From assembly GCA_002794465.1 (NCBI GenBank), contig MTSL01000178.1:95451-127450 (forward strand): 32,000 nt of DNA, given 5' to 3'. Position numbers and translations under genes: made by a program. Positions 4,155 to 32,000 of this stretch are shown in pieces. Positions within the stretch are counted from its first letter, which is position 1. Every line of letters begins with the position of its first letter. This stretch comes from Paramicrosporidium saccamoebae KSL3. Its lineage: Eukaryota; Fungi; Cryptomycota. The notes beneath the pieces are model-generated. The model saw only the letters and a list, made by a program, of their open reading frames with translations. It did not search any database and was not told the origin of the DNA.

Positions 4155-4178
4155 TTTAGATTGCTTTATAAAATTATA

Positions 4179-10357: not shown

Positions 10358-11362
10358 ATGGATAGTGCTACGACCAGCCAGTCGCTCGAAGATACCGGTA
10401 AATTCCAAGTGGTAACGCTTAGTGCTTAACCATGTAGTTGTACATAATCCAGGCACAGTGCTTGTTGGAATATTTGCCGCGGTTGTCGTGTTTCAGTATG
10501 GTCTGCTATTGTGGAAGCGCAAGCACCCTAACACGTATCTGTTGACTTCCCTGTTTCTACTGTGGGTTTTCCCCCTATTCATCGCCATTAATAACTCTTT
10601 TTGGAGATTTACAATTGTTTGGCTGATATACTCGGCGACGAACTACCGTGTCATAAGAGCCGCTAGCCAGCCAAAACTAGACCCCAAGACCCCTAGATTT
10701 GTGTATCGGTTCTATCGAGGATTATTCAATGTCACTATGGGCATTGCTGCATTCGGATACGGGCTATTCCTAGTGAATGCTTTCATATTTCCCACTGCAA
10801 CAATGATCGATCTGAGCATTACGTTGGTGTTCTATGGCCTTTATTTTGGAGTGTTGAGCAGAGATTTGGTGGAATATGGGGCAGATCGCATGGCTACCAC
10901 GATTGGCGTACGTCTTTTCACTCTCTTCATTTCTTAGTATTACAGCAAAGAAGGTTTTCCCACAAAACATTTGCAGGCGAACATATGCGCCGTTTGTGGG
11001 GACAGCGTCTGTAGTCTACTAAACGTCCCAACGCCTGCATCTCCAAGCCAAGCGACGCCACTCCTTAGTCCAGAAAATGCAGACTACTTGTTCCTCAACT
11101 GCAACCATGCCGTCCATCTCCTGTGTTTGCATGGCTGGTGCCTCATTGGAAAGAAGGACACCTGCCCTTATTGCAAAGAGAGGGTTGATCTCGGCCTTAT
11201 ACAAACAAATCCGTACACTAAGCTCATGCATTAATAATGATTAGATGGAGAGATCCCGAGTTTGTTTATGGAAAATTGCTTGATCTGGTGCGATACATGG
11301 TCGTATGGCAACCGCTTCTAGCCTTTTTTATACACATTGTTATAACAGTAATAAAGAACTGA
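10358..11362 (+). CDS. RNF121/RNF175-like multi-pass membrane RING E3 ligase, 300 aa
   Basis: Exons 10358-10397, 10438-10907, 10938-11212, 11245-11362. LYFGVLSRD...MATTIG|YYSKEGFPTKHL...CAVCG...LNCNHAVHLLCLHGWCLIGKKDTCPYCKERVDL...NP|WRDPEFVYGKLLDLVRYMVVWQP follows the RNF121 pattern. Confidence 0.92.
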
Positions 11363-14768: not shown

Positions 14769-14908
14769 ACCGGCCCCGAAGACACCCGGGCCGTAGAAAA
14801 AACTAAAGGGCAAAGAATAAACATCTTTGAATGTGAGGTTTATAAAGACCCTTTATCCCTGGCCCCTAGTTATATTATCTTACGATATAGTTTCGCATTA
14901 TTATTCTG

Positions 14909-16649
14909 ATGACATTTGTCAAGAAAATTGCTCCACACATAAAGAGGTTATCCAAACCTATCAGGTATATTTTCTTCAGAGTCTTTCCTTGTAGCGCCGT
15001 CTGCTTCCTAAGTGCTGTTATCTACATATTCCTACTACCCAGGCGCGAGCTTTCCTATCGGACTTATATCTCTGAGAGTGCACTTATGCCGGACTATGTA
15101 CTGTTATGCTGGTGGGTGCTCATTGTACTCAGGCATTTGGGCACTTTACAGAGGATTTTTATGAGGAGATGAAGAAAATTGCGGGCGAACTGGGAGAGAT
15201 GACTACTGCATCCGAGGCGATCAACGTAATCTTGGGGCATCTCAAAGACTCTTGCAGTCAGGTTGGAGTCCACGACCAGACCACTCCGTATGGAATACTG
15301 TCACCAGAGAGGGCGGATGGAACAGAGGGAATGGTGTTCATGGCTCCATTCCGCACTGCTTCTGGAACCGTTAACAAGTGCGGCATTGCTTACGTCCTTG
15401 CTGCAGCAAAGCAGTATAAAAAGTTCAAGTTTTGGTCACGGAATTTTGTAATCTTATTCCCTGGGATCGGAATGTCCACTGAAGGTAAAGTGTTCTCTGC
15501 AGTGGAGAAATGGTTGGAGGCTTACCACAAGATTAAGCCGGGAATATCTCTGTCGTCTGGAGCACTGCAAACTGGATTGTCCATTGAACTCGAAGGCGAT
15601 CAGTGCTCTATGCCATTTGGCGATCCCGAAGTCTACCTCGAAGGTCCAGATGGCTTACTGCCTAATCTTGATGTTGTGAATTCTCTCGTAATGATTGAAC
15701 GTCACCGAGGGGGAACTTTGAGACTCTTCCCGAAAGACAGTTTTTGGTACACGTTATGGTCGAGGATCAGCAATAATTATATTCGCGGAGTTGTTCACGC
15801 TGCATCCATGCTGGTTCGACAAGCCAGTGGGTACCCTGCTTTTTGCCATGGACCAATGCTTAAATATCGAATCGATATTCTTACACTCGGGTTTAGGCAA
15901 ATGCCCCGTGAAGGGTCATCTGAATATATCAACAAGAATCTCTTTGAGTATCCTCAGCATCTTGCTTAACACATTTTAGGATTGTGGAGATTACGTTCCG
16001 AAGTTTGAGTAACTTGCTTGAGCACATTCACCACTCATTCTTTTTCTACCTGCTGACAGATAACGACCGTTATGTTTCCATCATGAACTATATTGCCATT
16101 GGAGTCTTGCCTATCGCTGGATTGCTTGTCTGCTTTTTTTCCCGAGCTTCGCGTGGATCAGTGTTGGCGAGCTTTGCAATGTTTTTCCTGACCGCTAGCA
16201 TCAATGCCGCGGCTGTGTGCGGCTTTTCGTTCTCAAACAAATCGCCATTAATGCTCATTTTACCCACAATCTTGCTTATCCTCTTTATCAGACGGGTTGC
16301 ACCAAAGGCTGGAATTAATTCGTCCATTTGTCTGATTGCTGCCGTCTCTCTTACGGCTCAGATCTTCTTAAACTTTGGCCTTGCTGTCGTTTTGGGACTT
16401 TGCTATGGGCCAATACTCGCTTTTGCCGGCCGATCGCCAGCATGGGCAGCATTTTGTGCCCTCTGTAGCCCGTTGATGATTTTCACCATCCTCTACGCAT
16501 CTGGAAATCCATGGGCATCATTTTTGGCTGACCGACTCATGACATGGAATGCGGGCCTTCCATTTATCCTGTGGCAACCGCTAGTTCTCCTGGCCTGCGC
16601 AGGAGACGACGCTTCTCCAACAAATATTCGACACGAAAAACAAGAATAA
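14909..16649 (+). CDS. GAA1: GPI transamidase component Gaa1/GPAA1, about 547-557 aa
   Basis: Introns 15098-15132 and 15948-15979, plus tentative in-frame 14965-14994. Motifs RTYISESALMP, PERADGTEGMVF, EGPDGLLPNLDVVN, FRSLSNLLEHIHHSFFFYLL, and a hydrophobic multi-TM C-terminus. Confidence 0.92.
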
Positions 16650-16891
16650 ACTTTTAAAAAACATGGATATTCAGCCTGTAAGAGAAGAGCCACCTTTTAA
16701 ACAACATTGACTTCAGACCGTGAGAGAAGAATCAACTTTTAAACAACACGCATGTTCAGCATGCAAAACGAGAATCAACAAATAACATGGATATTCAGCT
16801 TGCAAAACGAGAATTAACAAATAACATGGATATTCAACGCATACAAAACAGGAATAAACTTTATTTTCTAAACAGCACGGATATATAGCAC
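16637..16891. repeat. Degenerate minisatellite, 6 units of 39-47 bp, between the convergent GAA1 and LSM6 stops
   Basis: Units start at 16637, 16680, 16722, 16765, 16804 and 16845; consensus approximately AAAACRAGAATMAAC(TTTT)AAANAACATGGATATTCAGC. Units 4 and 5 are nearly identical. Confidence 0.85.
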
Positions 16892-17152
16892 TATAACAGT
16901 TAGCCAGAGAACAGTTCATGTACCATTATTGCCACGAATGAAGGCATCGCCATAAGTTCTATGACGTACCCCATCAATCCACTCCTCAGCCTGTTCTAGG
17001 GCAATATTCATATATCCATCCAAGCAGACGAGTCTTCCTTGATATTCTGCCCCCGAGTTTAGGCGAACTAGAACAGCTTGGCCGATAACTTGCTTGAGAA
17101 AATCGCCGGGACTGCGCAAGACTTGACTAAATGGCTTCTTAGTCTCAGACAT
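16868..17152 (-). CDS. LSM6: U6 snRNA-associated Sm-like protein LSm6, 83 aa
   Basis: SPGDFLKQVIG...VRLNSGAEYQGRLVCLDGYMNIALEQ...YGDAFIRGNN. Intron 16891-16923 restores the conserved GNN|VLYI end. Confidence 0.96.
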
Positions 17153-17174
17153 TACGAATATATGGGGTATTTCT

Positions 17175-18121
17175 TTATTCGTCAACAAATGGAGCCACCA
17201 TGAATTCTAGAAATGCAGTTTCGTTTGAGATCGGCACCATCATTTGTAAGGACAACAGGCCGGTTGGACCGACCCTTAATGAGCATTTGCATGCACTTGA
17301 AAGTCCACGAAGTGCCCCTTTCAGAAATAGTGTTGGATATGTGAATGAAATGGGCTCAAGACACGAAAATGCCTCAACTCGATCTGCCTCGGTGGAGAGT
17401 GTAACCTGCACTGTTCTTATGTGATCTTGGCTGGTTAGCGTGACTACGTTTAAGGACGGGTCGGCCTCGATGGTGAATCTAGTATGTTCTGAAAATTGAA
17501 CGAGGCATTCTCTTAAAAGAGCCGCCTAAATCATCAATCAGGGCTCTCTAAGATACTTTGCAAATTATTTTTGTAGAGATTTCTGTCAATTTTACGTTGG
17601 GGAAGGATGGCAACGCTATTGTTGCTAACTGACACTCCACTTGGAGATTCGTTGAGGTTTCGCCCGATCTACATAGATTCGGATAGGCTCACAACGGACA
17701 GTACCGAAACGAGGCTCTGTCAAATGCGCTGCTCCATTCCAAGCTATACGTAGAGAGGGGGTCTTGTCCACGCTTTCCCAAACCGGTCGGCGTCTTACAG
17801 AACTCCAAGACTTGCAGCAGCTGCTGCATCGGAAGTACAAAAACCCGAGAGTCGTCCTCTTCCTGTGTATCGCTGTCATCGGGGCATCTCCAATGCCAAC
17901 CTTTGAAGGCAGACCGTGGGAGATACAAGTGCGACTGGAGTGTCTTATGATGGTCGGTGGACAACTTTAAGCCTTCGTCACTTGGCACAAACAGCACTGA
18001 TGGATTCTAATTCAGTTTAGCAGTGACTAATCCCCTTTACCTGATGACTTTCATGATGCAGAGCTTTGATTAACGCAACCAGTTTACTCTCCAAGGTCCC
18101 CTCGATTCTCAGAGACGCCAT
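17175..18121 (-). CDS. RAD1: 9-1-1 checkpoint clamp subunit Rad1 (Rad17/Rec1 family), 281 aa
   Basis: Exons 18041-18121, 17705-18006, 17557-17668, 17175-17525 (introns of 34, 36, 31 nt). The C-terminus ALRGLSSACKCSLRVGPTGLLSLQMMV...AFLEFMVAP matches Rad1 (KAL..SCKVSIR....G.LSLQ.M...F.E). EGLKLSTDHHKTLQSHLYL fits the N-terminal PCNA-like fold. Confidence 0.85.
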
Positions 18122-18234
18122 TGGCGCAAAGACAAATGTTTTATTTTAATACCATGTTACGTGGTAGGAAGTGGAGGCCCCTTTATCGGAAATCTTGCTC
18201 CGCTATATATTAGCTCTAATACATGCGTGCCATT

Positions 18235-19062
18235 TTATGCAACTCCAAGGTTTAAAAGCGTGCTCTGCCCGCCTGGGAGATATGAAACATTCTTGGCCGT
18301 GCTCAGGCTAGCAGCAACTTCTTTGGCCGCTTCGATGCGACGCAGCTCCACAATCCCAGTCCCTGACTTTTCCATTGCATCTGACAGAATCTTGGCTGCA
18401 TGAGCCTCTGCCTGTGCTCTGATAATGGCCGCACTCTTTTCATGCTCGCTCTTCTCGACGATGAAGCGAGCACGCTCTGCATCTTGCTGGGCCACTTGTT
18501 TAGCTTCTACTGCTCGTGTAAAGTCGGGCCCAAATGTGAGATGGGTTAGGGAGACGTCTTCCAAACGAATATTAAATTCCATTGCACGCTTCAACAGTTC
18601 TTCGCGGATGCGCGCTGATACGACCTCGCGTTGAGTTATAAGTTCGCTGGCATCAAATTGAGCAACGGTGGCTTTCAACACTTCATTACCAATGGATGGC
18701 AGTACACGTTCATCATAGTCGGGTCCCAATCGGGAATAAATAGTTGGAAGCTTTTCAATATCCGGTCGATGGAGCACGCGCAGTGTCAGTGATACAGTCT
18801 GCATATCTTTGCTGCCTGTAGTGGTCGTGATGATACGTGGGCGAGTGCGAATGTCATAAATAATGGCTCGCTGAAGCCACGGGATTACAAAGTGCATTCC
18901 CTCCCCGACAACTGTCTGCTTCACACCAGCCAGACGGTCAAAAATGACTGCACGCTGACCACCATCAACGCTGTATATACTAGAAGACATGATAGACGCA
19001 CCAATACCCACTGGAACTGCCCACTTGACCAAACGCTCGAATAGTGCGGATTGAAACGACAT
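18235..19062 (-). CDS. PHB1: Prohibitin 1 (mitochondrial inner membrane), 275 aa
   Basis: [84 protein letters not shown]. True start taken at MSFQ (19062). The ORF extension to 19422 is antisense to the next gene. Confidence 0.96.
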
Positions 19063-19093
19063 GGAATCACTCTGCCAGGGCAGGGCTGGAACG

Positions 19094-19531
19094 ATGGGTG
19101 ACCATGAAAAGTGGGAGGCGGTCCTTTTGAAAGACGAAGAACGTAAGAAAGGTAAAGCAGAGCCTGTGGACAAGAGGTCACTGTACGAACGCTTGCAAGA
19201 ACAAAAAGAGAAAGAAGACGCAGAGTACATGGAGAGATTAAAGGGAACGAACAAGACTGCGGCCCTTGTTGAGGAAGATGTTTTATATTTGGAAGAGATT
19301 GAGATGAGAAAGAGGAACCGCGAAAGACAACTTGAAGAGGAGGAACAGAATTTGGTGAAGGAATTCAAGAAACAAAGGCAGGACAAGTTCAATCCTGTTT
19401 CCGATGTCATCTTCGATCCCACTGTTGATCAGGAGAGGAAGAACAGTAGTTTAAAGGAAAAGAGGCAAGACTTAGGGATCGCTCCCAAAAAGAGACTGGA
19501 TTTAGGGATCGTACCGAAAAGGAAAACCTGA
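19094..19531 (+). CDS. FAM192A/NIP30 (PSME3IP1)-like nuclear protein, about 145 aa
   Basis: [18 protein letters not shown]...[14 protein letters not shown]...[11 protein letters not shown] matches the NIP30 N-terminal domain ([10 protein letters not shown]...LDEDE..FL). Start taken at ATG 19094; the in-frame ATG at 19061 overlaps the PHB1 start codon. Confidence 0.8.
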
Positions 19532-19580
19532 TTTAGGGATCGTATCGAAAAATAGAGACTGGATTTGGGGGGTTACACCG
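19457..19580 (+). repeat. Four-unit 30-33 bp tandem repeat straddling the stop of the NIP30-like gene
   Basis: Core GA(C/T)TTAGGGATCG recurs at about 19469, 19499 and 19530, with a degenerate fourth copy at about 19562. The first two units encode [10 protein letters not shown] and [10 protein letters not shown]. Confidence 0.85.
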
Positions 19581-19807
19581 AACAAGAAAGCGTCCTAGGT
19601 TAGCTGTGTAGAGAAAAGGAACTTGTTGGACAATATCTGTTTGCGATTGATGGCTCCAATCCTAAATGCCACCTCATAAAATATCCCTAACAAATTACGG
19701 CAGCGCCATCAGAGTTAATTAAATAACTAGTTCCCAAACTGACCTTTTAAGCCCAATTCTAGGCTAGCATTATAATCACAGCAATATTTTTACTAGTCAA
19801 TCCAATT

Positions 19808-21913
<2,106 letters not shown>

Positions 21914-22262
21914 AGCGTCCTGCACTGTCTGTTGGCTCTCTGAGCTTGCTATATGAGTGGTTGGCCCGGTTCGTTTATTTTTCTAAAAATTGACACACCT
22001 CAGCAACACCAATCAAGCGAGTCTGAGTTGCTATGCGTTAGTTCGTGACCAATTAAAGTTTAATACGACCATCATATATCCTAAAGAATAGAGGGAGGAT
22101 GGGGCGGGGTTAAGAGTTGAGAGTAGGATTGAGAGGTGTGAGGTGACAGGATATACATGTAAAGATTTTTATATCTACGGACAGTCTCAACGCAAAATTA
22201 ACTACAACCTCTCCCTCTTCCGCTGAAATTCTACTTATACTTATTATGCTTATTATACAATA

Positions 22263-24089
22263 TTACACACCATAAGCAAAGATTCTTTCCTCATGACGTT
22301 TTTTCTGCATGACAGCGCCAGGCCTAATTCGGGCAGCTTCATGCGACAAAAATTCAGGCGGAATTACAGACTTTGGTGCTTTTTGTACAATTACACGGAG
22401 TTCAAAATATAATTCCGAGTCGTCCTGTGTTAGGAACGTTATGGCAGTTCCCATTTTCCCCATCCGGCCAGTACGACCGATGCGATGAATGTAATCTTCA
22501 ATAGACTTGGCCATGTCGTAGTTTACGACAAGCGACACATTTTTAATGTCAATGCCGCGACCGGCGACGTCTGTGGCAATCAAAATATCTCGGCCATTCT
22601 TCTTAAATTGTGAAATTGCAACTTCACGCTGCTCCTGATTCTTGCCGCCGTGGAGAGCTACGCAGCGATGTCCAAGAATCTCCAGCCGACGGCTGAGAAA
22701 GTCTACAGTCTTCTTTTGATTCACAAAAATAATAATTGGGGGCTCATACTCCCCAGAGTTTAAAATATCCAAAAGACAACGATCCTTGTCGCTCTCTTTC
22801 AACATTACAAGCTTCTGGGTTACAGTGTCAGCAGCTTGTCCAGCCTGGCCAACAGTGATGGTGCCCGGCCTCTTCAAGTAACCCCGAGCCAGCTTCTCCA
22901 CGGCAGATGGCATAGTAGCAGAAAACATGGTAGTCTGTCTAAATTTGCCGTGGCTCAGATACTTTGCAGGGTTCTCAGCTGCCTCCGAGTCTGGCTTTGA
23001 CATGTTTGACGGTAAGCATTGCAAAATGAACTGTAGATCCTCTTCAAAGTTCAGGTCAATCATTCGATCAGCCTCGTCCAAGACAATACCAAAACACTGA
23101 TTTAACGCAAGGACATGCTGTTCCAGGCAATCTCGTAATCTACCAGGTGTTGCAATGACAATTTCTGCACCTTGTCTCATATGGACGCTCTGTTCTGCCA
23201 TAGAGTGTCCTCCAACTATGGCAACACACCGGAGACCTAGAGGCCGGCAAAACCTTTTCGTTTCACTCTCAATTTGTAGCGCCAGCTCACGCGTCGGCGC
23301 CAGCACCAACCCATAAGGGCCGTTTAGCATGTTTGCCTCATTTAAGGGGGGAAGCCGTAGGATTTGGCAGATCATGGGAAGAACAAATGCAGCAGTCTTA
23401 CCACTTCCTGTCTCTGCAATGCCAATCAGATCTCTCCCAGACATGATCACAGGGATCGCCTGTCTTTGTATAGGAGTTGGATCATCGTAACCAATCGACT
23501 GCAAAACATCATGGAGCTTCCTAGGAAACGGAGCCTCAGACCAATAGCGAAGGGGATTGGGCATTTGTCCTCCTGTGGTGGAAATGTTAAAATCTTCCTT
23601 AATGATACGCCAATCACGGTCCTGCATCTCATCCAGCGTCTTCTCTGCCCAGTGTCTATCGTCAAATCGGTCACCATGACCATTCCCAGTCATCATTTCA
23701 ATTTCGTTTCCAAAGGCGTCCACTGTCTTGATTACAGACGACTTTGGCGTACTTTTGCGGGGCATGTCTTGGACGGCGTAATTCTTCAAAGTGTCATCTG
23801 CAGTGTCCCAATCAAAGTTTACCTGCCTCTCACCGCGACGCACCTTCCGGTCCGTCTTTTTCTCATTCCCCAAGTATCTTTCTCTCACAATGTTCCTATC
23901 AGCCTGCGACAGTGCTGCGGGATTTATCATGTCTTCCTTCATTCCACTTTCCGTGTGCTGGAGCTTGCTGGACTCTGTGGTTTTTGCAATGTTTTGTCTC
24001 TCTTCCCTTGATAGAAACTTTGGCTTGTAACTAAGAGTATCGTCCTCTGCCCGCCTCTTTAAGAGTTCTCTCCTGACAGAAGGATCCAT
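22263..24089 (-). CDS. PRP28: U5 snRNP DEAD-box helicase Prp28/DDX23, 608 aa
   Basis: DDRHWAEKTLDEMQDRDWRIIKEDFNI, AETGSGKT, LDEADRM, FSAT, HRIGRTGR. Intronless. Confidence 0.96.
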   Translation of the reverse strand: MDPSVRRELLKRRAEDDTLSYKPKFLSREERQNIAKTTESSKLQHTESGMKEDMINPAALSQADRNIVRERYLGNEKKTDRKVRRGERQVNFDWDTADDTLKNYAVQDMPRKSTPKSSVIKTVDAFGNEIEMMTGNGHGDRFDDRHWAEKTLDEMQDRDWRIIKEDFNISTTGGQMPNPLRYWSEAPFPRKLHDVLQSIGYDDPTPIQRQAIPVIMSGRDLIGIAETGSGKTAAFVLPMICQILRLPPLNEANMLNGPYGLVLAPTRELALQIESETKRFCRPLGLRCVAIVGGHSMAEQSVHMRQGAEIVIATPGRLRDCLEQHVLALNQCFGIVLDEADRMIDLNFEEDLQFILQCLPSNMSKPDSEAAENPAKYLSHGKFRQTTMFSATMPSAVEKLARGYLKRPGTITVGQAGQAADTVTQKLVMLKESDKDRCLLDILNSGEYEPPIIIFVNQKKTVDFLSRRLEILGHRCVALHGGKNQEQREVAISQFKKNGRDILIATDVAGRGIDIKNVSLVVNYDMAKSIEDYIHRIGRTGRMGKMGTAITFLTQDDSELYFELRVIVQKAPKSVIPPEFLSHEAARIRPGAVMQKKRHEERIFAYGV

Positions 24090-24118
24090 TCTGCAAGACC
24101 ACGGTATCGCAGCCCTGT

Positions 24119-25123
24119 ATGACGACCGACCCTAGTCCCGCTGCTACTGCTCCTATTCCCAGTCCCCTTCAGGCCCATATCGACGAGATTTATGAATACT
24201 TGAACGACTCAAAGGCTGATGTACGCAGGATGGCCGTTGAGCTTTTGGCCGGTCTTTCGGTCGACCAGCCGGATGCCCTCGTTATACTGAACAGCGACCC
24301 TGCAAAATACGTTTCCCGTCTCTTTTCAAAGCTCTCGGATCAGCCTGTCATTGCTGCCTTAGCCTGGGATGCACTTACAAATTTTGCAAGTGACAAAGAG
24401 GTCGCTCTTTACTTGCTTGACAAGCACCTGGAGCGAATCCTTGCTTGTGTGCGCTCTCGTGAACTGGTTTTTTCCGAGGCTGCCACAAAACTGCTCTCGA
24501 ACCTCACAAAATATGCCGACACGCGGCCCGCACTGGCAACACCGCTTCTAGCCGATCTGATTCATATTTATTTGGCCGGCATCCGACACAATCCAAACTG
24601 TGACTATGCTTTTCTGGCAAGTTGCTTTGCCGATCTGACAAATATCCGCGAATGTCGCATATTTTTCCTTGAAGACCTAAGTCGTCTCAATAGTATTCTC
24701 CAGGACCTTCACTCGAAATCTGTAATACGACGTGGCGGCGTTGCATCCATAATCCGAAACTGCCTTTTTGAGACTGACTACCATGCTGCAATTCTGGAGA
24801 AGGAGATTGAAGACGACTTTATCATCACGACACTGGCGGGACGTCTCTTGGATTCGCGCTCAAAGCTCGATGGAGAGGAGAGGGACAAGTTACCAGTTGA
24901 ACTTCAGCTGCTTGACAAGCTCGAGGCCGAGTCGGACATTGCTGTGAGGTCCATCGTTGTGGAATGTCTCATTATTCTGGGCACCACAAGGGAAGGCCGT
25001 GACACGATCCGTGCCAAGGAAATTTACCCAATCCTTCGGGAGTGGCACATTTTAGAGGAGAATTACGACATGAAGGAGCTTATTGAGAAACTTGTTGAGC
25101 TCTTAATCCGAGACGAGGCCTGA
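24119..25123 (+). CDS. HGH1: Hgh1/FAM203 eEF2 chaperone, 334 aa
   Basis: IRRGGVASIIRNCLFE, KLPVELQLL, VECLIILGTTREGRDTIRAKEIYPILREWH. Confidence 0.92.
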   Translation: MTTDPSPAATAPIPSPLQAHIDEIYEYLNDSKADVRRMAVELLAGLSVDQPDALVILNSDPAKYVSRLFSKLSDQPVIAALAWDALTNFASDKEVALYLLDKHLERILACVRSRELVFSEAATKLLSNLTKYADTRPALATPLLADLIHIYLAGIRHNPNCDYAFLASCFADLTNIRECRIFFLEDLSRLNSILQDLHSKSVIRRGGVASIIRNCLFETDYHAAILEKEIEDDFIITTLAGRLLDSRSKLDGEERDKLPVELQLLDKLEAESDIAVRSIVVECLIILGTTREGRDTIRAKEIYPILREWHILEENYDMKELIEKLVELLIRDEA

Positions 25124-25331
25124 GCGCAACGGGCCGGGATGATTTACCTAGTGTGAATTGGGGTTTGACTAATGGAATGAGTTTTGGTTAGAGACAAGCC
25201 GTGATTAAACAAAGACTTGATAAAATTTAGTGGCTTTATAGGATGGGTAAATTGATGTATGAATGAATGGGCGGGTGGGATGCAACGTATTCGCAATCTT
25301 AAATGAATCATTGCAAGATACTACTTTATTA

Positions 25332-25596
25332 GAGTATTTGGCACATAGGCCGTCACCCCCCAATAACCTGAATTCTAGGATCGCACCATCAGGATTACCA
25401 GCCATAGGTGGATGCTGTCGCGTAGTGGGGATAATACCACGGACTTTGTCAGGCGGGGAGAGAAGAGAAGAGAATTTATTCAGTCAATCCAACAACCCAT
25501 TTATAGTCTCACAAATAACATAATCCTCAAATGGTAAAGATCTCATTATTCTTGATCGATTGTTCTGGTTGTCCTTCTCCAAACTGGGAAGCTATT
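25332..25596. repeat. Dispersed repeat copy A (inverted relative to copy B at about 29.3-29.7 kb)
   Basis: The reverse complement of 25415-25462 matches 29570-29617 at 40 of 48 nt. Similarity is clear over 25415-25500 and patchier out to the stated edges, which are approximate. Confidence 0.8.
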
Positions 25597-25700
25597 TCCA
25601 AACACCCAACTAGTCAGTCTTCTACGTCACAGATGCTGTCATCTAACAGAGCCTCTATTACAAACCTCGCAACTCTGATAACTAATACTCTTTTTATTGG

Positions 25701-26385
25701 CTAACAAAAGCGAATGTACACGTAGATAAAGACAAGGAGGACTGCGCCGATAATGATGAACGCGCCGTATGTCCTCCAAAGCATCATCAAGTTCAATTTT
25801 TTTGTATCTCTTAAATACCGGCGGCTTTCCGCACTCAAGTTACTCGATAAAAGGCTCATATTTTCCAATTTGGAGCCTCTCTCTAAAACGTCGTTGATGC
25901 TCGTCGTCATAATCTTGGTGACATCCACCAATTCTTCCTGCAGGCGATCCAAGTTTTGTCTTGCGCGCACATCCTGGTATGACCGTTTTGTCTTTTGGAT
26001 AACCGTATCAAATTTGATAAAGGCGTAGGGCCGGGCCGCAGAATCAACCATGCCACCGAACTGAGTGGAGAATTCTTTTTGAAGGTCACTGAGGAGGGAG
26101 AATGCCAATTTTTTTGGATAAAGGCGGTCACAAAGGCCAATGTAGCCAACACCATCGCTGACAGCAACATGAAAGGTAAATTGTCCTGCTTCTATAGACG
26201 TCATCGGGTCTGTGACGCTTCCCAGCGTCTTTAGTATTGACTTTGTCTTATTCTTGTGGTCAGGAAAGTCTCGGTCAAGCTAAAAGTATAAGTACAGACA
26301 CACTGGCTGGCACCTCTTCTTCGTCCATTGAAGCGGCCAGCGGAAGTCCATCATGGACTCGGGCTATCATCACGGAACGTACCAT
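25701..26385 (-). CDS. SEC22: ER-Golgi R-SNARE Sec22 (longin + SNARE + TM), 216 aa
   Basis: Exon 1 26314-26385 (MVRSVMIARVHDGLPLAASMDEEE), intron 26280-26313 (GTGCCA...TTTTAG), exon 2 25701-26279 with YPKKLAFSLL, ARPYAFIKFD, NLDRLQEELVDVTKIMTTSINDVLERG and a terminal TM. Confidence 0.95.
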
Positions 26386-26439
26386 TTCTTTAAAAATAAA
26401 ACTATTTGTTTAGCGAGTTTAAAGAAAGTGGTTGGCGGC

Positions 26440-28988
26440 ATGCCGGTTCCCAAAAGCGTGCTATCGTACCCGAGCGAAGCAGAGGCTTTCATTGATGCGG
26501 ACAGCTTCAGACAGACACCCGAGAAAATTCCATACCGTGAAATTGCAAACGTTTGCATTTACGATGCTGATGTACTTACTGGACGTAGTTTGCTAGATTC
26601 TGTAGGGCAATCAAGCCAATCTTTTCCAGATAGCTCAAACTGGCCCTTTTCATTTGGTGGGCGTTGCTCCCAAGGAAGAATGTATCATATAATTATTCTC
26701 CTTTTACTCGTGTAGATGTCCACCAAGGGTATCGGCACAAGTATGTATCGATCGAGCCAATTATCGAGTACATGTTTGAATATCCGTACGGTAAAGATGC
26801 AGTGGTGTGGTTGCGCAGCGACGCTGCGTTTTATCGTATCACTTCAATCTCTGAAGAGTACCGGGTATTGTGGAAGCCTGTCCGAGAGGGAGCTGATATT
26901 GTCGGACATGCTGTGAACACTCTGCTGAATATCGCAGTTACTAGGGATATCAGAGTTGTGCTTGAGCGCATTTGTAAACTATCCAAACAACCGCTTCATA
27001 GCGTTATAAGACTCATTTCAAAGCATCGACAACTTGTTCAGAAAGAACTACATTCACAAGAAAGCAGGAGGATCCCAAAATTTCGATTTATCAAGGCACT
27101 GAGTACCGAAAAATCCTGGACTTTGGCAATAGAGAAGGCTTGCCAAGATGTTTTATTAGCGTCTCATGGGTTAGAGTCTGAGACCGAAAGTCCGATCAAA
27201 TCTAAACTCGATACATCAAGTCCCATACCAATAGCAAAGAGACCGAGAGGGTTTAATGGCGCCATTCCATTGTCAATTGAAGAGATTGAGCCGTCGAGTG
27301 CTACGCAACCCCTCGCGCCTCTTTTAAAAGGTGCGATGGAAATGGCCCACCGGAGGGCATCTCGGTCAATTTTACCTATACACGTTGAATCGATAGAGTT
27401 ACCACAACTCTATGACTTGGAGACTAAATGTCCCTTTTGTGGGATCACCGTCGCTCGTACTGGAAACACGAGTGTTGTAGAGCGCATGGTTTGGCACTTG
27501 GATTCAATGCATCCTGTGCAGGTTCGGAAAGATTTAGCAAAAAAGAACAATTCTTTAAGAGGTGCAATGAAAGCCAACTGTCCCGTTCTTCGTGACGCCC
27601 TAGTTTGGCCCGATCGCCAGATTATTGAACAGATTCGAAAGCGAGATGAAATTTGCAACCTTCAGTGGAAAGTTTCAGGGATTGTAGATATTACAATACA
27701 CCCGACAAACACTTGTACACTCAGCGATGAGAATCACTCTCTCGCTATTGAAAATGAATCCCCAATCACCACGAGCCGTGCTAAGAAGAGCGACCCTTTA
27801 ATCACTTTGAATGATGCTACTGAAAGCGAGTCTGTCAGCAGCACAACTTGTGCGAGAAAGAATGTGCCCTTGATCATTACAGATTGTGCTACTGACAGCG
27901 AGACTCTAATCGCCACAAATCGTGCTAGTAGGGATGAGCCTTTAATCATTGTGGATTGTGCTACTGAAGATGAGTCTCTAAGAGCCACGAGTCGCGTTAG
28001 GAAGAACGAGCCCGTGATCGTTATAGATCGTGCTAGGAGGAACGAGCCTTTGATCACTATGGATCGCGCTAGGAAAGACGAGTCGTTGATCATTACGGAT
28101 AGCGTTAGGGAGGACAAGCCTTTGACCATTACGAGTCGTGCTAGGAAGGACGAGCCTTTGGTCATTACGGATGATGCTGCTGAAAATGAATCTCCAATTG
28201 CCATGGATGATGCTGCTGAAAATGAATCTCCAATTGCCATGGATCATGCCGCTGAAGATGAGTTTCAAATCACTACAGGTTGTGCTTCTGCTGTCGATAA
28301 CAAATTGCTGATAACTATTGACGACGCTCAAACTGCCGAGAACAGAAATTCAATACCTAGAAGCAAACTTTTGACTATTGAAGCGCAGGCTATTGGCATC
28401 AAAGGAAAAGTTCAGCTTAGTGATCAAGAAGCTGCCGCTCTCATTGTCTCGGCCATGGAGCGCATGGTGGGAAAATCTATCACAGATACTCTACAGGAAC
28501 ATTCTGCAACGCATTCTCAACCCAGCGCAAAAAGAAGTTTTGCCGATACACACGAGTTATACAATCGTACACGCCGCAAATCTTTACAAAGTGCTGCTGA
28601 TTTGGAGAATCATGTCTATTATGACGCTTCATGTCCGCCAAAAAGAGTATCAGGACAAGTTGTAGCCCGAAAGCCTGTACCGGTGATATCGTATAATTAT
28701 GAGAATCAGTCCCAGGAGTCTTTAAAGCGGCCATCTCTCCAGGCACAGACTGACGTAAATACTATTACCGTGCAGCATCAATGTTTACAGAACCCATTGC
28801 TATCCAATACCCAGCAGGCTTGGGATCGTTCCTTAACTACCGATAGTGCATTAAAGCCCTTGGAGACTGCCTCGCAAGGAGCAAATTCTGAAAGGCGAGA
28901 AAAAACAGCCACAAGGCCGTACTCATTCAGCCAAGGTGGGTCTCCGGCCAAGCCGTCATGTAAAGAAACAGATGTGCAATCGCGATGA
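26440..28988 (+). CDS. RFTS (DNMT1 replication-foci-targeting) domain + C2H2-like zinc finger + 12-aa repeat protein, 826 aa; Raf2/Dos2-like architecture
   Basis: Exons 26440-26571, 26606-26681, 26716-28988 (two 34-nt introns). The spliced N-terminus (IPYREIANVCIYDADGNQANL...FHLVG...VSIEPIIEYMFEY...AVVWLRSDAAFYRITSISEEYRVLWKPVREGA) fits the DNMT1-RFD pattern. CPFC-x18-HLDSMH at 27429-27512. No methyltransferase motifs seen. Domain call is by recall, not by HMM search. Confidence 0.75.
27750..28325 (+). repeat. Coding 36-bp (12-aa) tandem repeat, about 16 degenerate units
   Basis: RARKDEPLVITD-type and DAAENESPIAMD-type units. Exact 36-bp duplication at 28169-28204 and 28205-28240. Confidence 0.9.
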
Positions 28989-29326
28989 TGGATGGCTATT
29001 GTTGGAGATGCCAGGTCAACCGTTACTGGTAATGTTTTTGTTAAACACTATCCGCTTATGATTGCAAACCCTGATAGCTACCCTACAATCCGGTGTGTTG
29101 AGGGTGGTAGTCCACAACGGCGCCTTTAATAAAGATAAACTCTCGCTAACCAATGCTTTTCCATGCCCTCAGTGTCGCAAAGCCCGTAATTGGCGCGCCA
29201 AATTGTGGTGTGATATAGAGGGTTTCTCAGTTGGATAGTTGTGTGATAGAAAGGTGGACCGATCAGCTGAGTATTTGTGTGATAGAGCGTGAGATATGGT
29301 GAGCCAACTCGCTATTTTTAAGGCCC

Positions 29327-29691
29327 AATAGCTTCCATTGGGCGCTACGATCTGATGGTGAGTCTTGCCCCATAAATGTGGACGATATTTAATAAAATGA
29401 GCTCTCGCTTGAAGTGTCACGATAAGGAGTTCCTGTACGTAGGCTGTTGTATCACCACGGGATAGAGTGGGTCGATTAGCTGGGTATTTGGGGACTATTC
29501 CGTTTCCTTCTCGTCTGATATAGGTCGTTGGATTAACAGCGAACAGATTTTTATATCGCTTCAGCTCGTCTCCTCCCGCCTGACAAAGCACGTGGCATTT
29601 TCTCCGCTACGCGACAGAGAGGCAGTATAATCACGGGCCAGGGGTTCGAATCATAATAGGGGGCCTTGCTATTATCCATGCACAAATATTC
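29327..29691. repeat. Dispersed repeat copy B (inverted relative to copy A)
   Basis: Core 29570-29617 (CTCCTCCCGCCTGACAAAGCACGTGGCATTTTCTCCGCTACGCGACAG). Additional matching patches at 29520-29550, about 29480-29500, 29327-29336 and 29678-29691. Confidence 0.8.
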
Positions 29692-29855
29692 ATCGTGTAT
29701 AATGTTTTCTTTTCCATTACAATAAGACTTTTACGATTCCTGTGCCAAACAATGTTTGTCAAGACTCATTGGACGAGGCATTGACTCTATTGTTTTGATT
29801 GGCTAGAACATTCCAACAGTCTCTAGAAAAGATCCCCTGAAAGAGACAACGCTGC

Positions 29856-31970
29856 ATGAGTGGCGATTTGCCCCCATCCAGAGTCCCAGCAGGACAGCCC
29901 CCCATATCACTGCGCCTCATGAGTAGTCCCCCTCTGGCAGCCTCTGCCACAGCTTTTATAAACGAAGACTCAATCAGGAGCTCTCGTCTTGTCAATGGAC
30001 AAAGCCAGAATTTTAGCAGGGCCAATGCGGACACAGAGGAGGGCAATACAGCGTTTGAAGAGACCGTACAACCATCGGGTGCGATCCCCCTGGGCAAGCC
30101 TGCTTCTTTTTTGGACAGTTTTCAAGCCCCCAGTGAATTTGGGATGGACAATTCGTCAAATTCCCCAGTATACAGGCATCTATATGACCGTGAGTACTCT
30201 AGCACTTCCGATGAGCCGCAGTTGCAGGAGCCCCTCAACAGCAACGAGACAGCCATGATTGTGCAGAACCCAGCGTACGAGCAGGCGCAGTTGCTGCTGG
30301 TTTCGCTTCTGGAGAACTTTTGCGCTTTGTACGACAGGAATCCGGACAAGAATCGACGTTTGTTTATGGCTGTTTGTCGCCAACTTTGGAATATGGGCAT
30401 TCTTTCCTCTGAGGACTTTTTCAGCCGGAGTGAGCAACTCCGAGGTGTTTACAAAGAGGCTTTCCGCACACTGGTGCTTCAGGCTATCCAAGGGATTGAG
30501 GCCAATGAGACCGACAATCGCTATTTGGCCGACGATTTTGAAGATTCTGAGGCTGATTCTGGAGCAAAGTCTCTTAGTGGCTACTCTAGCCGCAACTCTT
30601 CGTTTATGAGTGGTACCTTTGAGGTAAAGCCTGTGCGCTCACGTTTGGAGACTGAATTTCGGGACCTGGATCCAATTGGCCGTGGTGGTTTCGCACAAGT
30701 GTTTCGAGGGGAGCACCGAATTGACCACTGCAAATATGCATTCAAGCGGATTGAATTTAAATCCAAGACTTCAGAGTCATATGAAAAAATAATACGAGAA
30801 ATCAAGTCCTTGGCGCATCTTGAGCATCCCAACATTGTTAGATATCATGGTGCTTGGGTGGAGGAAAAGGCTCTACTAACTAAAGAATGCCCGAAATCGG
30901 CAGATAAAATTGATACTACATCGTTTAGGGTTGAAGAATCGGTCCCATCTGAGGCTGGAATTAGCATTCCAATTTACAACGATGCGCAGCAGTTTGAAAT
31001 GGAAATGTCACTTGGATATTACATGATCATCCAGATGGAACTGTGCCAGTTTACCCTCGCAGATTGGTTAGAGCAACGCAATCTTTTAATTTGCCATTCG
31101 AATCCTTGGAAGCCGGAATATTCGCAAAAAACCTGCCGATCACGTATTCCGGCAGATTGCATGGCCACATTGTTGGGCGCCAACACTTGGGACATTAATC
31201 AAACGGAGAATAACCGTATTTTCAAGTGCATCGTAAAGGCCCTTCAACATATCCATGCCAAAGGCATTATCCATCGCGATCTGAAACCAGGAAATATTTT
31301 ATTCCAGGTCGATGGGGATTCTTTCATTCCCAAGATTGGTGATTTTGGACTGGCAGCGGATATGGGAATGCCTAACAGTGTGCAACAGTCGGAGGAGAGT
31401 ACTCCAACTAGAATCGACTCGGCCACGGCCGGAAAGTCACCTTCGCCATCAGTTTCGCGATCAACAAGGACAACTGGACTAGGAACGTGCACATATGCTG
31501 CACCTGAACAGATCCGTGGTGACGACGCAAGTTACAATGAAAAGGTCGATATTTTCAGTCTGGGAATAATCCTGTTTGAGCTATATTGTCCCTTTGCCAC
31601 TCGTATGGAGCGTCACAACGTTCTCGAAGACCTGAAGAAGGGGATTATATCAGCCTCTTTTATGAAACGTTGGCCTAAGGAGGCCACGTTTATCTGGTCT
31701 TGTATTTCTGAAAATGCCGATACGCGCCCCTCTGCGGAGCAGATATTTGAAAGTGAAATCTTTGAACAAGATCCAGATGAGACCATTGAGAGGCTTTCCA
31801 AAGAGAATTCTACTCTCAAACGCCTCTTGGAGGCTGAACGTGAAAAGGTTAGATGTTTGGAAAGTAGCCTTGTGCAGTCGATTGACAAGGTGACGCAACT
31901 TCAAGACAAGATTATTGAAGGAGCTTCCCTGGAGATTAGAAGTCTGGGCATTAGCTCAACCGCGGATTGA
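29856..31970 (+). CDS. HRI: Heme-regulated-inhibitor-type eIF2alpha kinase (EIF2AK1 / Hri1-Hri2-like), 704 aa
   Basis: N-terminal QLLLVSLLENFCALYDRNPDKNRRLFMAVCRQLWNMGIL matches the HRI-specific helical region. Kinase motifs: IGRGGFAQV, YAFKRI, REIKSLAHLEHPNIVRYHGAW, kinase insert, IQMELC, IHRDLKPGNI, KIGDFGLA, GLGTCTYAAPEQ. C-terminal coiled coil. Confidence 0.88.
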   Translation: MSGDLPPSRVPAGQPPISLRLMSSPPLAASATAFINEDSIRSSRLVNGQSQNFSRANADTEEGNTAFEETVQPSGAIPLGKPASFLDSFQAPSEFGMDNSSNSPVYRHLYDREYSSTSDEPQLQEPLNSNETAMIVQNPAYEQAQLLLVSLLENFCALYDRNPDKNRRLFMAVCRQLWNMGILSSEDFFSRSEQLRGVYKEAFRTLVLQAIQGIEANETDNRYLADDFEDSEADSGAKSLSGYSSRNSSFMSGTFEVKPVRSRLETEFRDLDPIGRGGFAQVFRGEHRIDHCKYAFKRIEFKSKTSESYEKIIREIKSLAHLEHPNIVRYHGAWVEEKALLTKECPKSADKIDTTSFRVEESVPSEAGISIPIYNDAQQFEMEMSLGYYMIIQMELCQFTLADWLEQRNLLICHSNPWKPEYSQKTCRSRIPADCMATLLGANTWDINQTENNRIFKCIVKALQHIHAKGIIHRDLKPGNILFQVDGDSFIPKIGDFGLAADMGMPNSVQQSEESTPTRIDSATAGKSPSPSVSRSTRTTGLGTCTYAAPEQIRGDDASYNEKVDIFSLGIILFELYCPFATRMERHNVLEDLKKGIISASFMKRWPKEATFIWSCISENADTRPSAEQIFESEIFEQDPDETIERLSKENSTLKRLLEAEREKVRCLESSLVQSIDKVTQLQDKIIEGASLEIRSLGISSTAD

Positions 31971-32000
31971 GAATTGGGAGTTGAGAATTGAGAATTGAGA
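31967..32000 (+). repeat. Heptamer microsatellite (TTGAGAA)n, running off the window edge
   Basis: TTGAGAA TTGGGAG TTGAGAA TTGAGAA TTGAGA; the first unit contains the kinase TGA stop. Confidence 0.8.

Follow-up and report, generated by a model that had tools for sequence, protein, structure and literature searches.

A spliced gene of Paramicrosporidium saccamoebae encodes a stand-alone RFTS and zinc finger protein with a Raf2-like layout

Background

Raf2, also known as Dos2, Clr7 or Cmc2, is a protein of 636 aa in the Clr4-Rik1-Cul4 complex of S. pombe, and fission yeast depends on it for both H3K9 methylation and H3K14 ubiquitylation. Raf2 and its ascomycete orthologues have been described as proteins with an RFTS domain at the N-terminus plus a C2H2 finger of atypical type, and with no methyltransferase (White et al. 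2014, PMC4121317). The RFTS domain of Raf2 is required for Cul4 binding and for H3K9 methylation, and RFTS-only proteins have so far been described only in Ascomycota (PMC4121317). Raf2 counts as an accessory subunit specific to CLRC (bioRxiv 10.1101/2025.08.28.672867), and its mechanism was still called unknown in 2026 (PMC13079825). The other carriers of the domain relevant here are DNMT1, MET1 and DIM-2, in which it accompanies CXXC, BAH and C5-methyltransferase domains.

Here we describe PSACC_02856, a gene located in a stretch of 32,000 nucleotides (the window) from Paramicrosporidium saccamoebae (Rozellomycota). It is a real, functional spliced nuclear gene for a non-catalytic protein with a complete DNMT1-type RFTS domain, a C2H2-type finger and a disordered tail. 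By analogy we consider it moderately probable that its product works in the manner of Raf2/Dos2, as an adaptor and not as an enzyme. The literature on Paramicrosporidium was searched for DNMT1, H3K9, Clr4 and related topics, and nothing relevant was found.

Results and discussion

Gene structure and the public model

The initial annotation had claimed that two introns join three frames into a protein of 826 aa. We recovered the same structure on the plus strand, as removal of two GT..AG introns of 34 nt each gives a CDS of 2481 nt that stays in frame and encodes 826 aa and a stop. In exon 1 (26440..26571, aa 1-44) lie both the start codon and IPYREIANVCIYDAD, the motif of the first RFTS strand. 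Matching starts were found in two orthologues with reconstructed 5' exons, MLTKIRSYPAEQDVF in L002 and MGLTLDASLPDEEAAF in L006, and the in-frame ATG at 26353 is disfavoured as a start since it would overlap exon 1 of the Sec22-like gene on the opposite strand. Intron 1 (26572..26605, phase 0, GTACTT...CTGTAG) has the same position and phase in the two orthologous loci, with lengths of 43 nt (L002) and 31 nt (L006), and once it is removed the match to Pfam RFD widens and covers positions 4-127 of the profile.

Exon 2 (26606..26681, aa 45-69 plus 1 nt) encodes GNQANLFQIAQTGPFHLVGVAPKEE and has a length of exactly 76 nt in all three species (window, L002 and L006). The exon-2 peptide GNQANLFQIAQTGPFHLVG matches the conserved G..V.L..I.R.GPF..G of those relatives that are read in a single frame at this place; the GPF motif is kept in P0005, P0014, P0017, P0021, P0028 and P0032, and reads GPL in P0020. 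Intron 2 (26682..26715, phase 1, GTATCA...GTGTAG) holds an in-frame stop and interrupts the same codon (t|at = Tyr70) in L002 (34 nt) and L006 (30 nt), with conserved exon flanks. Exon 3 (26716..28988, aa 70-826; ORF 26664..28988) continues to the annotated stop.

Further, candidates of an ultra-short intron class (GTA..YAG, 27-34 nt) occur across the window, and a Pfam Gaa1 match of 218 bits, which spans the junction, is obtained only if an intron of 32 nt at 15948-15979 is spliced out. This short-intron class, along with the conserved position, phase and exon-2 length and the conserved exon-2 peptide, makes introns 1 and 2 better than chance. The GFAT intron was uninformative as a short/long calibration, as its 33-nt and 51-nt versions are both in frame and fall in a variable loop, and a multi-exon gene at ~1300-4200 was dropped as an additional intron test because its assembly did not keep frame. 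Neither the genome paper (PMC5701793) nor the microsporidian intron paper (PMC6349667) contains intron-length statistics for P. saccamoebae.

The gene had been presented as hidden, which is overstated since it is already annotated as PSACC_02856 ("hypothetical protein", 831 aa); what is missing from the public model is the correct splicing. In the deposited model intron 1 is left in as coding sequence, a different intron of 53 nt (26663-26715, donor GTTGCT) is taken out, and residues 45-74 are mis-modelled. The Pfam DNMT1-RFD score of this model is 22.7 bits over profile positions 60-127, which rises to 29.2 bits for the spliced 826-aa protein. The N-terminus of the public model is therefore wrong, and its C-terminus is probably wrong as well. 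The faulty model hides half of the RFTS domain, and the protein is thus left without any recorded Pfam domain; this is a case where the annotation of the P. saccamoebae genome misses ultra-short introns.

Candidate 3' exons

Beyond the annotated stop the gene probably has two further, unannotated exons, which on sequence evidence would encode the C-terminal zinc ribbon of the family. Candidate intron 3 (28919..28971) has a consensus-like GTACTC donor and an acceptor at 28965 (47 nt) or 28971 (53 nt), with 28940-28971 (32 nt) as an alternative. No other GT..AG pairs connect the main frame with the CWRC frame, and these versions would skip the annotated stop at 28986-28988; if the intron is real, exon 3 probably ends at 28918 or 28939. 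Candidate exon 4 (28972..29021) would then provide the first half of the ribbon, CAIAMMDGYCWRCQVN, and candidate exon 5 (29135..29238) the second half, (H)KLSLTNAFPCPQCRKARNWRAKLWCDIEGFSVG, followed by a stop.

When the C-termini of relatives were run by tblastn against a database of 801 nt, exon 4 was matched by P0033 (E 0.002) and P0029 (E 0.008), and exon 5 by P0002 (E 0.004) and P0019 (E 0.016). Candidate intron 4 (29022..29134, 113 nt, GTTACT..ATAAAG; alternative 29029-29102, 74 nt) gives CWRC-x13-CPQC, where the spacing in the family is x8-x17. The x13 model ranks first against a small ribbon profile, although weakly (~1 bit), which is not proof. Residues 809-839 of the extended model are collinear with residues 926-954 of P0002, while the zinc ribbon is absent in the orthologue P0003. 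The N-terminal splicing of the 826-aa product holds, and its end at residue 826 probably falls short of the true C-terminus.

The RFTS domain

The RFTS domain extends over 26512..27182 (about aa 25-225), split by introns 1 and 2, and consists of a beta-rich N-lobe and a helical C-lobe. With Pfam PF12047 (DNMT1-RFD), for which the gathering threshold is 22 bits, the whole spliced protein scored 29.2 bits and its N-terminal 221 aa 32.1 bits, over profile positions 3/4-127 of 144. The assignment of an RFTS domain to the N-terminus is thereby corroborated, and the motifs listed for it are present, except that the gap between Y-R and E-Y is six residues in VWLRSDAAFYRITSISEEYRVLWKPV and not five. 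The same profile matched 19 of the 25 sequences scanned, these being the exon-3 fragment of the window and 24 relatives (18 matched).

The structural predictions agree with the profile. It should be noted that the AF2 and Foldseek model of the window protein covers the exon-3 part, and that the full RFTS domain with its N-lobe was modelled in the orthologue P0017. The exon-3 translation reached pLDDT >90 at aa 80-220. DNMT1/MET1 RFTS structures made up 11 of its 13 top Foldseek matches (probability 0.99-1.0), and for full-length P0017 all 16 top matches were RFTS domains (E 4e-8, TM 0.61, ~210-220 columns); sequence identity over the two sets of matches is only 14-21%. The best fold matches include DNMT1 RFTS structures with bound ubiquitin and with bound ubiquitylated H3. 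Structure prediction and Foldseek had been proposed as a check, and they gave the RFTS fold, with top matches nearly all from the RFTS domains of DNMT1, MET1 and DIM2. A family profile run against the PDB also found the MET1 RFTS domain (E 0.0018). In the deep family alignment W101, A107, Y109, Y118, G133 and Q184 are invariant, along with the finger ligands.

The zinc finger and the missing methyltransferase

Classical C2H2 fingers read C-x2-4-C-x12-H-x3-5-H and adopt a beta-beta-alpha fold. The finger of the window protein, located at 27429..27512 (CPFCGITVARTGNTSVVERMVWHLDSMH), reads C308-x2-C311-x18-H330-x4-H335, and an alignment of 20 sequences shows no variation at its two C, the P and the first H. 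It is predicted by AF2 as beta-beta-alpha with pLDDT ~90, the family profile detects solved C2H2 fingers in the PDB at E 0.009-0.07, and in P0010 and P0016 the ligands are spaced classically (x12/x3). Because of the 18-residue spacer, and since Pfam zf-C2H2 gave no match in the window protein, we call the finger an atypical C2H2, though fold and ligands fit. About 30 residues past the finger lies a W-P motif (W367-P368, 27606..27611), which is a majority column in two family alignments.

Pfam found neither DNA_methylase nor BAH at E<=1 in the window protein, and none in 24 relatives. The FxGxG, PCQ and ENV motifs are absent from the window protein, and no ORF of the window of at least 150 aa contains a paired FxGxG/PCQ. 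In DNMT1 the zinc module that follows the RFTS domain is a CXXC domain, and no such domain was detected by Pfam in the window protein. No methyltransferase was found in the transcript or nearby, where the neighbouring genes encode a Sec22-like SNARE and an HRI-type kinase. In these respects the initial annotation was right: it had reported the finger followed by low-complexity repeats, which we find downstream as 36/72-nt tandem repeats, the lack of BAH, FxGxG and PCQ, and a protein that stands alone without continuation into a methyltransferase.

Relatives and gene neighbourhood

An exhaustive HMMER (phmmer) search of 1.84 billion representatives, with the deposited protein P0001 as query, gave 34 proteins at E<=0.001. 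These were the query itself, 25 relatives matched over the RFTS-to-finger region, and 8 proteins matched over the repeat region only, which we take as unrelated. All the relatives are metagenome or read-archive proteins, and the core residues are conserved across about 25 of them. Word-indexed searches, whether with the whole protein, its N-terminal 389 aa or the family profile, found nothing beyond the protein itself and P0032; as the 389-aa query missed even its own record, these results say nothing about absence.

Genes from the neighbourhood HRI kinase / RFTS gene / Sec22 / DUF383-384 / DEAD helicase / GFAT recur on all six contigs of relatives that were examined, with the fullest runs in L005, L006 and L008. 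Judging from this common neighbourhood, the relatives seem to represent a single orthologous gene within a single clade, and the RFTS gene is kept as a positional orthologue among related, mostly uncultured organisms. Upstream and divergent lies the Sec22-like longin SNARE gene (25701..26385, minus strand; Pfam Longin and Synaptobrevin), which adjoins the RFTS gene also in L005, L006, L008 and a JGI contig. The HRI-type eIF2-alpha kinase gene is found downstream (29856..31970, plus strand; Pfam HRI2_3H and Pkinase); it adjoins the RFTS gene in L002, L005 and L008, and is ~7 kb off on the same contig in L007. A tRNA scan of the window detected none.

Three of the orthologues (P0018, P0019 and P0024) carry a full zf-CHY domain, with Pfam scores of 52-54 bits against a cut-off of 31.3. 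CHY zinc fingers are typical of RCHY1/Pirh2 E3 ligases; the window protein is without CHY. Pfam detected no RING in the orthologues, while P0024 shows a RING-H2-like Cys/His pattern by eye. The CHY fingers may be seen as an independent hint that the family is connected to ubiquitin ligases.

Comparison with Raf2 and DNMT1

An N-terminal RFTS domain, then an atypical C2H2 finger, the lack of a methyltransferase and a fungal host are common to the window protein and Raf2. The proposed Raf2/Dos2-like layout is hence present in all three of its parts and matches the published description (PMC4121317). Compared with Raf2 as published, the window family may differ by the W-P motif, the C-terminal CW.C...C..C zinc ribbon, the 'PIDLT'-type motifs (a tandem array in P. 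saccamoebae) and the CHY finger of the three orthologues, and its Rozellomycota host is far outside the Ascomycota where the Raf2 orthologues were described. The exhaustive HMMER search detected no pairwise sequence link to Raf2; none of the 34 proteins has the length of Raf2, and the family profile matched no Raf2 chain in the PDB. A mapping of Raf2 I98/S100/E104 onto the window protein by way of the DNMT1 motif was considered and rejected.

We suggest that the product of PSACC_02856 may act as an adaptor like the fission-yeast protein. The RFTS domain would then be a protein-interaction module which docks on a ubiquitin-ligase scaffold (Cul4 in Raf2) and/or on ubiquitylated H3 tails, as in DNMT1, and the finger and the tail motifs could add contacts to chromatin or partners, e.g. 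SUMO or HP1. In this way the product would link histone ubiquitylation with heterochromatin marked by H3K9 methylation, and the lineage in which it does so may be without DNA methylation. The role as a CLRC-like silencing adaptor is one that we infer by analogy with Raf2.

A somewhat unlikely explanation is that the gene is an independently 'decapitated' DNMT1 or DIM-2, where the RFTS domain was kept as a free reader of ubiquitylated, perhaps H3K9-methylated, H3 outside Cul4-Clr4, and the finger was gained separately. The best sequence and fold matches are indeed the RFTS domains of DNMT1, MET1 and DIM2, including the complexes with ubiquitin and ubiquitylated H3, and the exhaustive search recovered no Raf2-like protein; however, the only RFTS structures in the PDB are from the DNMT1 family, which would give these top matches either way. 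Further, it is for the fungal Raf2 group, and not for DNMT1, that an RFTS domain with a C2H2 finger has been published as the hallmark (PMC4121317), and the expected CXXC domain is not detected in the window protein. The window protein has the same fold and Pfam family (PF12047) as the RFTS domains of DNMT1, MET1 and DIM-2, but their CXXC, BAH and C5-methyltransferase domains are missing from it, and unlike in those enzymes the domain heads a mostly disordered protein. As no Raf2-like protein is among the 34 matches, a common origin with Raf2 and an independent loss of the catalytic half of DNMT1 are both possible. A conserved RFTS and C2H2 protein in Rozellomycota and their uncultured relatives would mean that the architecture dates from the base of Fungi, or that RFTS was freed from DNMT1 twice.

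Tandem repeats and tail motifs

The 36/72-nt tandem repeats detected by TRF (27815..28261) encode some 8-10 copies of (R/K)(K/R)(D/N)E-P-L-I-I-T-D, followed by acidic/Ser-rich residues. Judged from their sequence, the repeat cores resemble SUMO-interaction motifs or, equally, HP1-binding PxVxL motifs, and a SUMO-interaction-like pattern ([VIL][VIL]x[VIL] core with acidic/Ser flanks) occurs eight times in the window protein. P0002 and P0003, the closest orthologues, have no such array, which hence cannot be essential to the core function. Of 24 family members, counting the window protein, which has no such motif, 10 carry a single 'PIDLT'-type motif where 0.86 in total was expected from shuffles, and over the family these motifs are ~13-fold enriched.

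With these motifs, the ribbon and the CHY orthologues at hand, one could also speculate on a reader that evolved in rozellids and short-branch microsporidians independently of Raf2, which we regard as unlikely. It would combine a DNMT1-derived RFTS domain reading ubiquitylated H3 with the C2H2 finger, the SUMO/HP1 motifs and the ribbon, and in some species have its own CHY-RING ligase. If true, organisms that lost DNA methylation would have in it a self-contained circuit for heterochromatin which both reads and writes ubiquitin.

We find it quite improbable that the protein is instead a SUMO/ubiquitin-pathway adaptor at replication forks or in DNA repair, where RFTS would bring it to replication foci, the motif array would bind poly-SUMO and the CHY(/RING) orthologues would be SUMO-targeted ligases. 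The eight hydrophobic-core-plus-acid motifs, the 'PIDLT' enrichment and the CHY fingers in orthologues are consistent with such a role, and for Raf2 itself, binding to DNA polymerase epsilon (Cdc20) and to Mms19 has been reported (PMC4121317). Against this, short linear motifs are weak as evidence and the array is missing in the closest orthologues, Pfam finds no RING in P0024, and the data fit roles in replication and heterochromatin alike.

Finally, the zinc-ribbon pieces in two shifted frames past a stop could come from frameshift decay or assembly errors, but it is highly improbable that the gene is a remnant in decay, or an artefact of GT..AG pairs picked to fit the frame; for the N-terminal 826 aa this is largely refuted already, given the exon-intron structure conserved in three species, the long open frame, core residues kept in ~25 orthologues, the conserved synteny and a fold predicted with high confidence.

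Alongside the Raf2-like adaptor reading that we prefer, the candidate 3' zinc-ribbon exons and the CHY zinc fingers of three orthologues are new here, and the invariant residues of the RFTS domain and the finger give a short list for testing.

Gene model of PSACC_02856

The spliced protein is 96% identical to a database entry, the 831 aa hypothetical protein PSACC_02856, which is located on contig MTSL01000178.1 of assembly GCA_002794465.1. The species, Paramicrosporidium saccamoebae, is placed in Rozellomycota, Fungi, bearing out the initial annotation of the host as an early-diverging, fungus-like genome. The two introns proposed there (26572-26605 and 26682-26715) are each 34 nt long and run from GT to AG, and their excision gives an in-frame CDS of 2481 nt encoding 826 aa. 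The described N-terminal motifs and the C-x2-C-x18-H-x4-H pattern were also recovered, except that the spacer from Y-R to E-Y is x6 and not x5. The deposited model departs from the 826 aa reading at residues 45-74 only, where intron 1 is left in and the only intron excised is one of 53 nt (26663-26715) with the donor GTTGCT.

Introns 1 and 2 are real, and four independent lines agree on this, the first being the class of ultra-short introns in the window (last section). The Pfam DNMT1-RFD score rises from 22.7 bits (profile 60-127) for the deposited model to 29.2 bits for the two-intron model, with 32.1 bits for the N-terminal fragment of the latter, and the match then stretches over both junctions (profile positions 3/4-127). 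In the alignment, the exon 1 and exon 2 peptides match the ...LP.R.L..V.IY...G..V.L..I.R.GPF.A.G... of the relatives in which a single frame spans this region (P0005, P0014, P0017, P0020, P0021, P0028 and P0032), and the deposited read-through version VLTGRSLLDSVGQSSQSFPDSSNWPFSFGG has no counterpart in these. Both introns recur at identical codon positions and phases in L002 and L006, orthologous and syntenic loci taken from public read archives, where they measure 43/34 nt and 31/30 nt, respectively. The intron sequences themselves have diverged among the three species, whereas exon 2 measures 76 nt in each. Many relatives begin within the RFTS at their residue 2-3; for the closest orthologues P0002 and P0003, encoded at L002 and L006, the loci indicate that this is because the ORF callers overlooked the same 5' introns.

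RFTS domain and zinc finger

The RFTS domain proposed for the spliced N-terminus was confirmed by the Pfam RFD match, by profile matches to MET1 and DNMT1 and by its predicted fold, and covers residues ~25-225. A family profile matched the Arabidopsis MET1 RFTS in PDB with E 0.0018, along with the mammalian DNMT1 RFTS. An AlphaFold model of the exon 3 part only, based on a 25-sequence alignment, reached pLDDT >90 at residues 80-220, and Foldseek matched it almost exclusively to DNMT1/MET1 RFTS domains (probability 0.99-1.0). When the complete RFTS was modelled in the positional orthologue P0017, the best 16 matches were all RFTS domains of DNMT1, MET1 and DIM2 (E down to 4e-8, TM 0.61 across ~210-220 columns). 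The DNMT1 RFTS binds ubiquitin and ubiquitylated H3, and solved complexes with these ligands (5wvo, 5ydr, 6pzv) were among the best fold matches.

The zinc finger comprises residues 308-335, and its C, P, C and first H are invariant across the family alignment. Two orthologues carry the classical C-x2-C-x12-H-x3-H spacing, the finger is predicted to be beta-beta-alpha (pLDDT ~90), and the family profile matches solved C2H2 fingers in PDB.

The suggestion that the RFTS stands alone, without a methyltransferase, also holds. Pfam detected no DNA-methylase, BAH or CXXC domain in the protein, which has no FxGxG, PCQ or ENV motif either, and paired FxGxG/PCQ motifs were found in no long ORF of the window. 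The flanking genes encode a Sec22-like SNARE (upstream, on the opposite strand) and an HRI-type eIF2-alpha kinase (downstream).

Family and synteny

Searching 1.84 billion representative proteins exhaustively with HMMER (E<=0.001) gave 34 matches: the query itself, 25 over the RFTS-to-finger region (best E 2.5e-42) and 8 on the repeat region only, which we take as unrelated. No DNMT1 or Raf2 candidate was seen among the 34. All 10 relatives looked up, originating from Logan, JGI and unannotated NCBI assemblies, lacked an informative name ("hypothetical protein" or none). A Pfam scan of the window exon 3 fragment and 24 relatives detected RFD in 19 of the 25 sequences, zf-CHY in 3 and a methyltransferase in none.

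The neighbourhood of the gene (HRI kinase, RFTS gene, Sec22, DUF383/384, DEAD helicase and GFAT) recurs in all six contigs examined (L002, L005, L006, L007, L008 and one JGI contig), extending with Band_7, Rad1, LSM and Gaa1 in the longer L005 and L006. This strongly conserved microsynteny argues that the relatives examined all come from a single orthologous gene within one clade. About ten genes (Gaa1, LSM, Rad1, Band_7, FAM192A, GFAT, DEAD helicase, DUF383/384, Sec22, RFTS gene and HRI kinase) form a block that is shared, with some inversions, between window positions 16440-32000 and L002, L005, L006, L007 and L008. The contigs that carry it trace to six separate public datasets (read sets or metagenomes) and presumably derive from uncultured relatives of Paramicrosporidium.

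A W-P motif ~30 residues past the finger is common to the family. A 'PIDLT'-type tail motif is present in 10 of 24 members, against 0.86 total expected occurrences; the 24 include the window protein, which lacks it. Three orthologues, P0018, P0019 and P0024 (the last at L007 8001-10760), have an inserted CHY zinc finger (52-54 bits). P0024 also displays a RING-H2-like Cys/His pattern not called by Pfam. The orthologue P0032 (L004 5753-8041) has a 25-30 residue insertion, RLDGWKHAPCVFAQPQFIIHAIYGNPQG, in the RFTS helical lobe that is found in no other member; the ORF caller may have translated an unspliced intron here.

Probable 3' extension and tandem repeats

About half of the members carry a zinc ribbon, CW.C-x8-17-C..C, at the extreme C-terminus, which is missing from the window protein both as first read and as deposited. 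Just 3' of the annotated stop (28986-28988) two further frames give ...DGYCWRCQVNRY and ...KLSLTNAFPCPQCRKARNW...*, and both pieces were matched by tblastn of the relatives' C-termini (E 0.002-0.016, 801 nt database). Two GT..AG introns on the forward strand can link them to the main frame: candidate intron 3 at 28919-28965/28971 (with a consensus-like donor, GTACTC) or 28940-28971, and candidate intron 4 at 29022-29134, which yields CWRC-x13-CPQC, inside the family spacing range, though other acceptors are possible. With both pieces included, the model comes to 854-861 aa and its ribbon can be aligned collinearly with the one in P0002; P0003 has none. PSACC_02856 probably extends into 3' exons encoding this ribbon, the alternative being that the downstream frames reflect frameshift decay instead of introns.

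At 27815-28261 the gene contains DNA repeats (36/72 nt). The encoded unit, present in 8-10 copies, has a basic stretch, then P-L-I-I-T-D, then acidic or serine residues. Such cores are compatible with putative SUMO-interaction motifs and HP1-binding PxVxL motifs alike. Since the closest orthologues lack the array, it is a species-level elaboration. A 168 aa antisense ORF (27734-28240, reverse strand) lies wholly within the repeats and is most likely a by-product of their composition, not a gene.

Possible relation to Raf2

The protein encoded by PSACC_02856 combines an RFTS with a C2H2 finger, is conserved and has no catalytic domain. The CHY finger is a typical feature of RCHY1/Pirh2 ligases, and the CHY fusion in three orthologues is hence a further hint of a ubiquitin-ligase link. 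The layout is like that of Raf2/Dos2 (RFTS + C2H2, no methyltransferase), as Raf2 is described in the literature, and we suggest that the protein is probably an adaptor of this type. The same architecture defines Raf2 and its ascomycete orthologues, and methyltransferase-free RFTS proteins are fungus-specific (White et al. 2014, PMC4121317); H3K14ub is written by CLRC itself (PMC13079825, PMC12916305). The chief alternative is a DNMT1 that was truncated independently and reads ubiquitylated H3 as a free protein; it would fit the DNMT1-like fold matches, and we regard it as less likely. The stand-alone RFTS + C2H2 class is already known; PSACC_02856 adds a deep-branching member to it, with extra modules and a corrected gene model. 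In the literature searched, no protein of this kind is mentioned for Paramicrosporidium or Rozellomycota, and an Encephalitozoon study found neither a DNMT1 nor a Raf2 homologue (PMC10158259). PSACC_02856 should be useful to researchers on Raf2, the mechanism of which is still open.

Ultra-short introns in the window

Scanning the window for short GT..AG segments linking long open frames revealed an intron class of 27-34 nt with a GTA[CT] start and a YAG end, at 10908-10937, 12475-12504, 15948-15979 and 21199-21231, with further candidates at 1735-1761, 2747-2776, 3322-3353 and 3803-3829. The 32 nt intron 15948-15979 is needed to fuse two ORFs into a Gaa1 protein, and a 218-bit Pfam match crosses the junction. 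Such introns seem to be missed or misplaced in deposited gene models. At 12439-16649 (forward strand) the public annotation appears to merge two genes into a 1280 aa product that has both a NatB_MDM20 and a Gaa1 domain. Taken as separate genes, NatB requires the 30 nt intron 12475-12504 and Gaa1 that at 15948-15979. For GFAT a 51 nt intron is deposited, and a 33 nt alternative with a GACTAAT branch-like site fits too. The region 1300-4200 (forward strand) resembles a multi-exon gene with several introns of ~30 nt.
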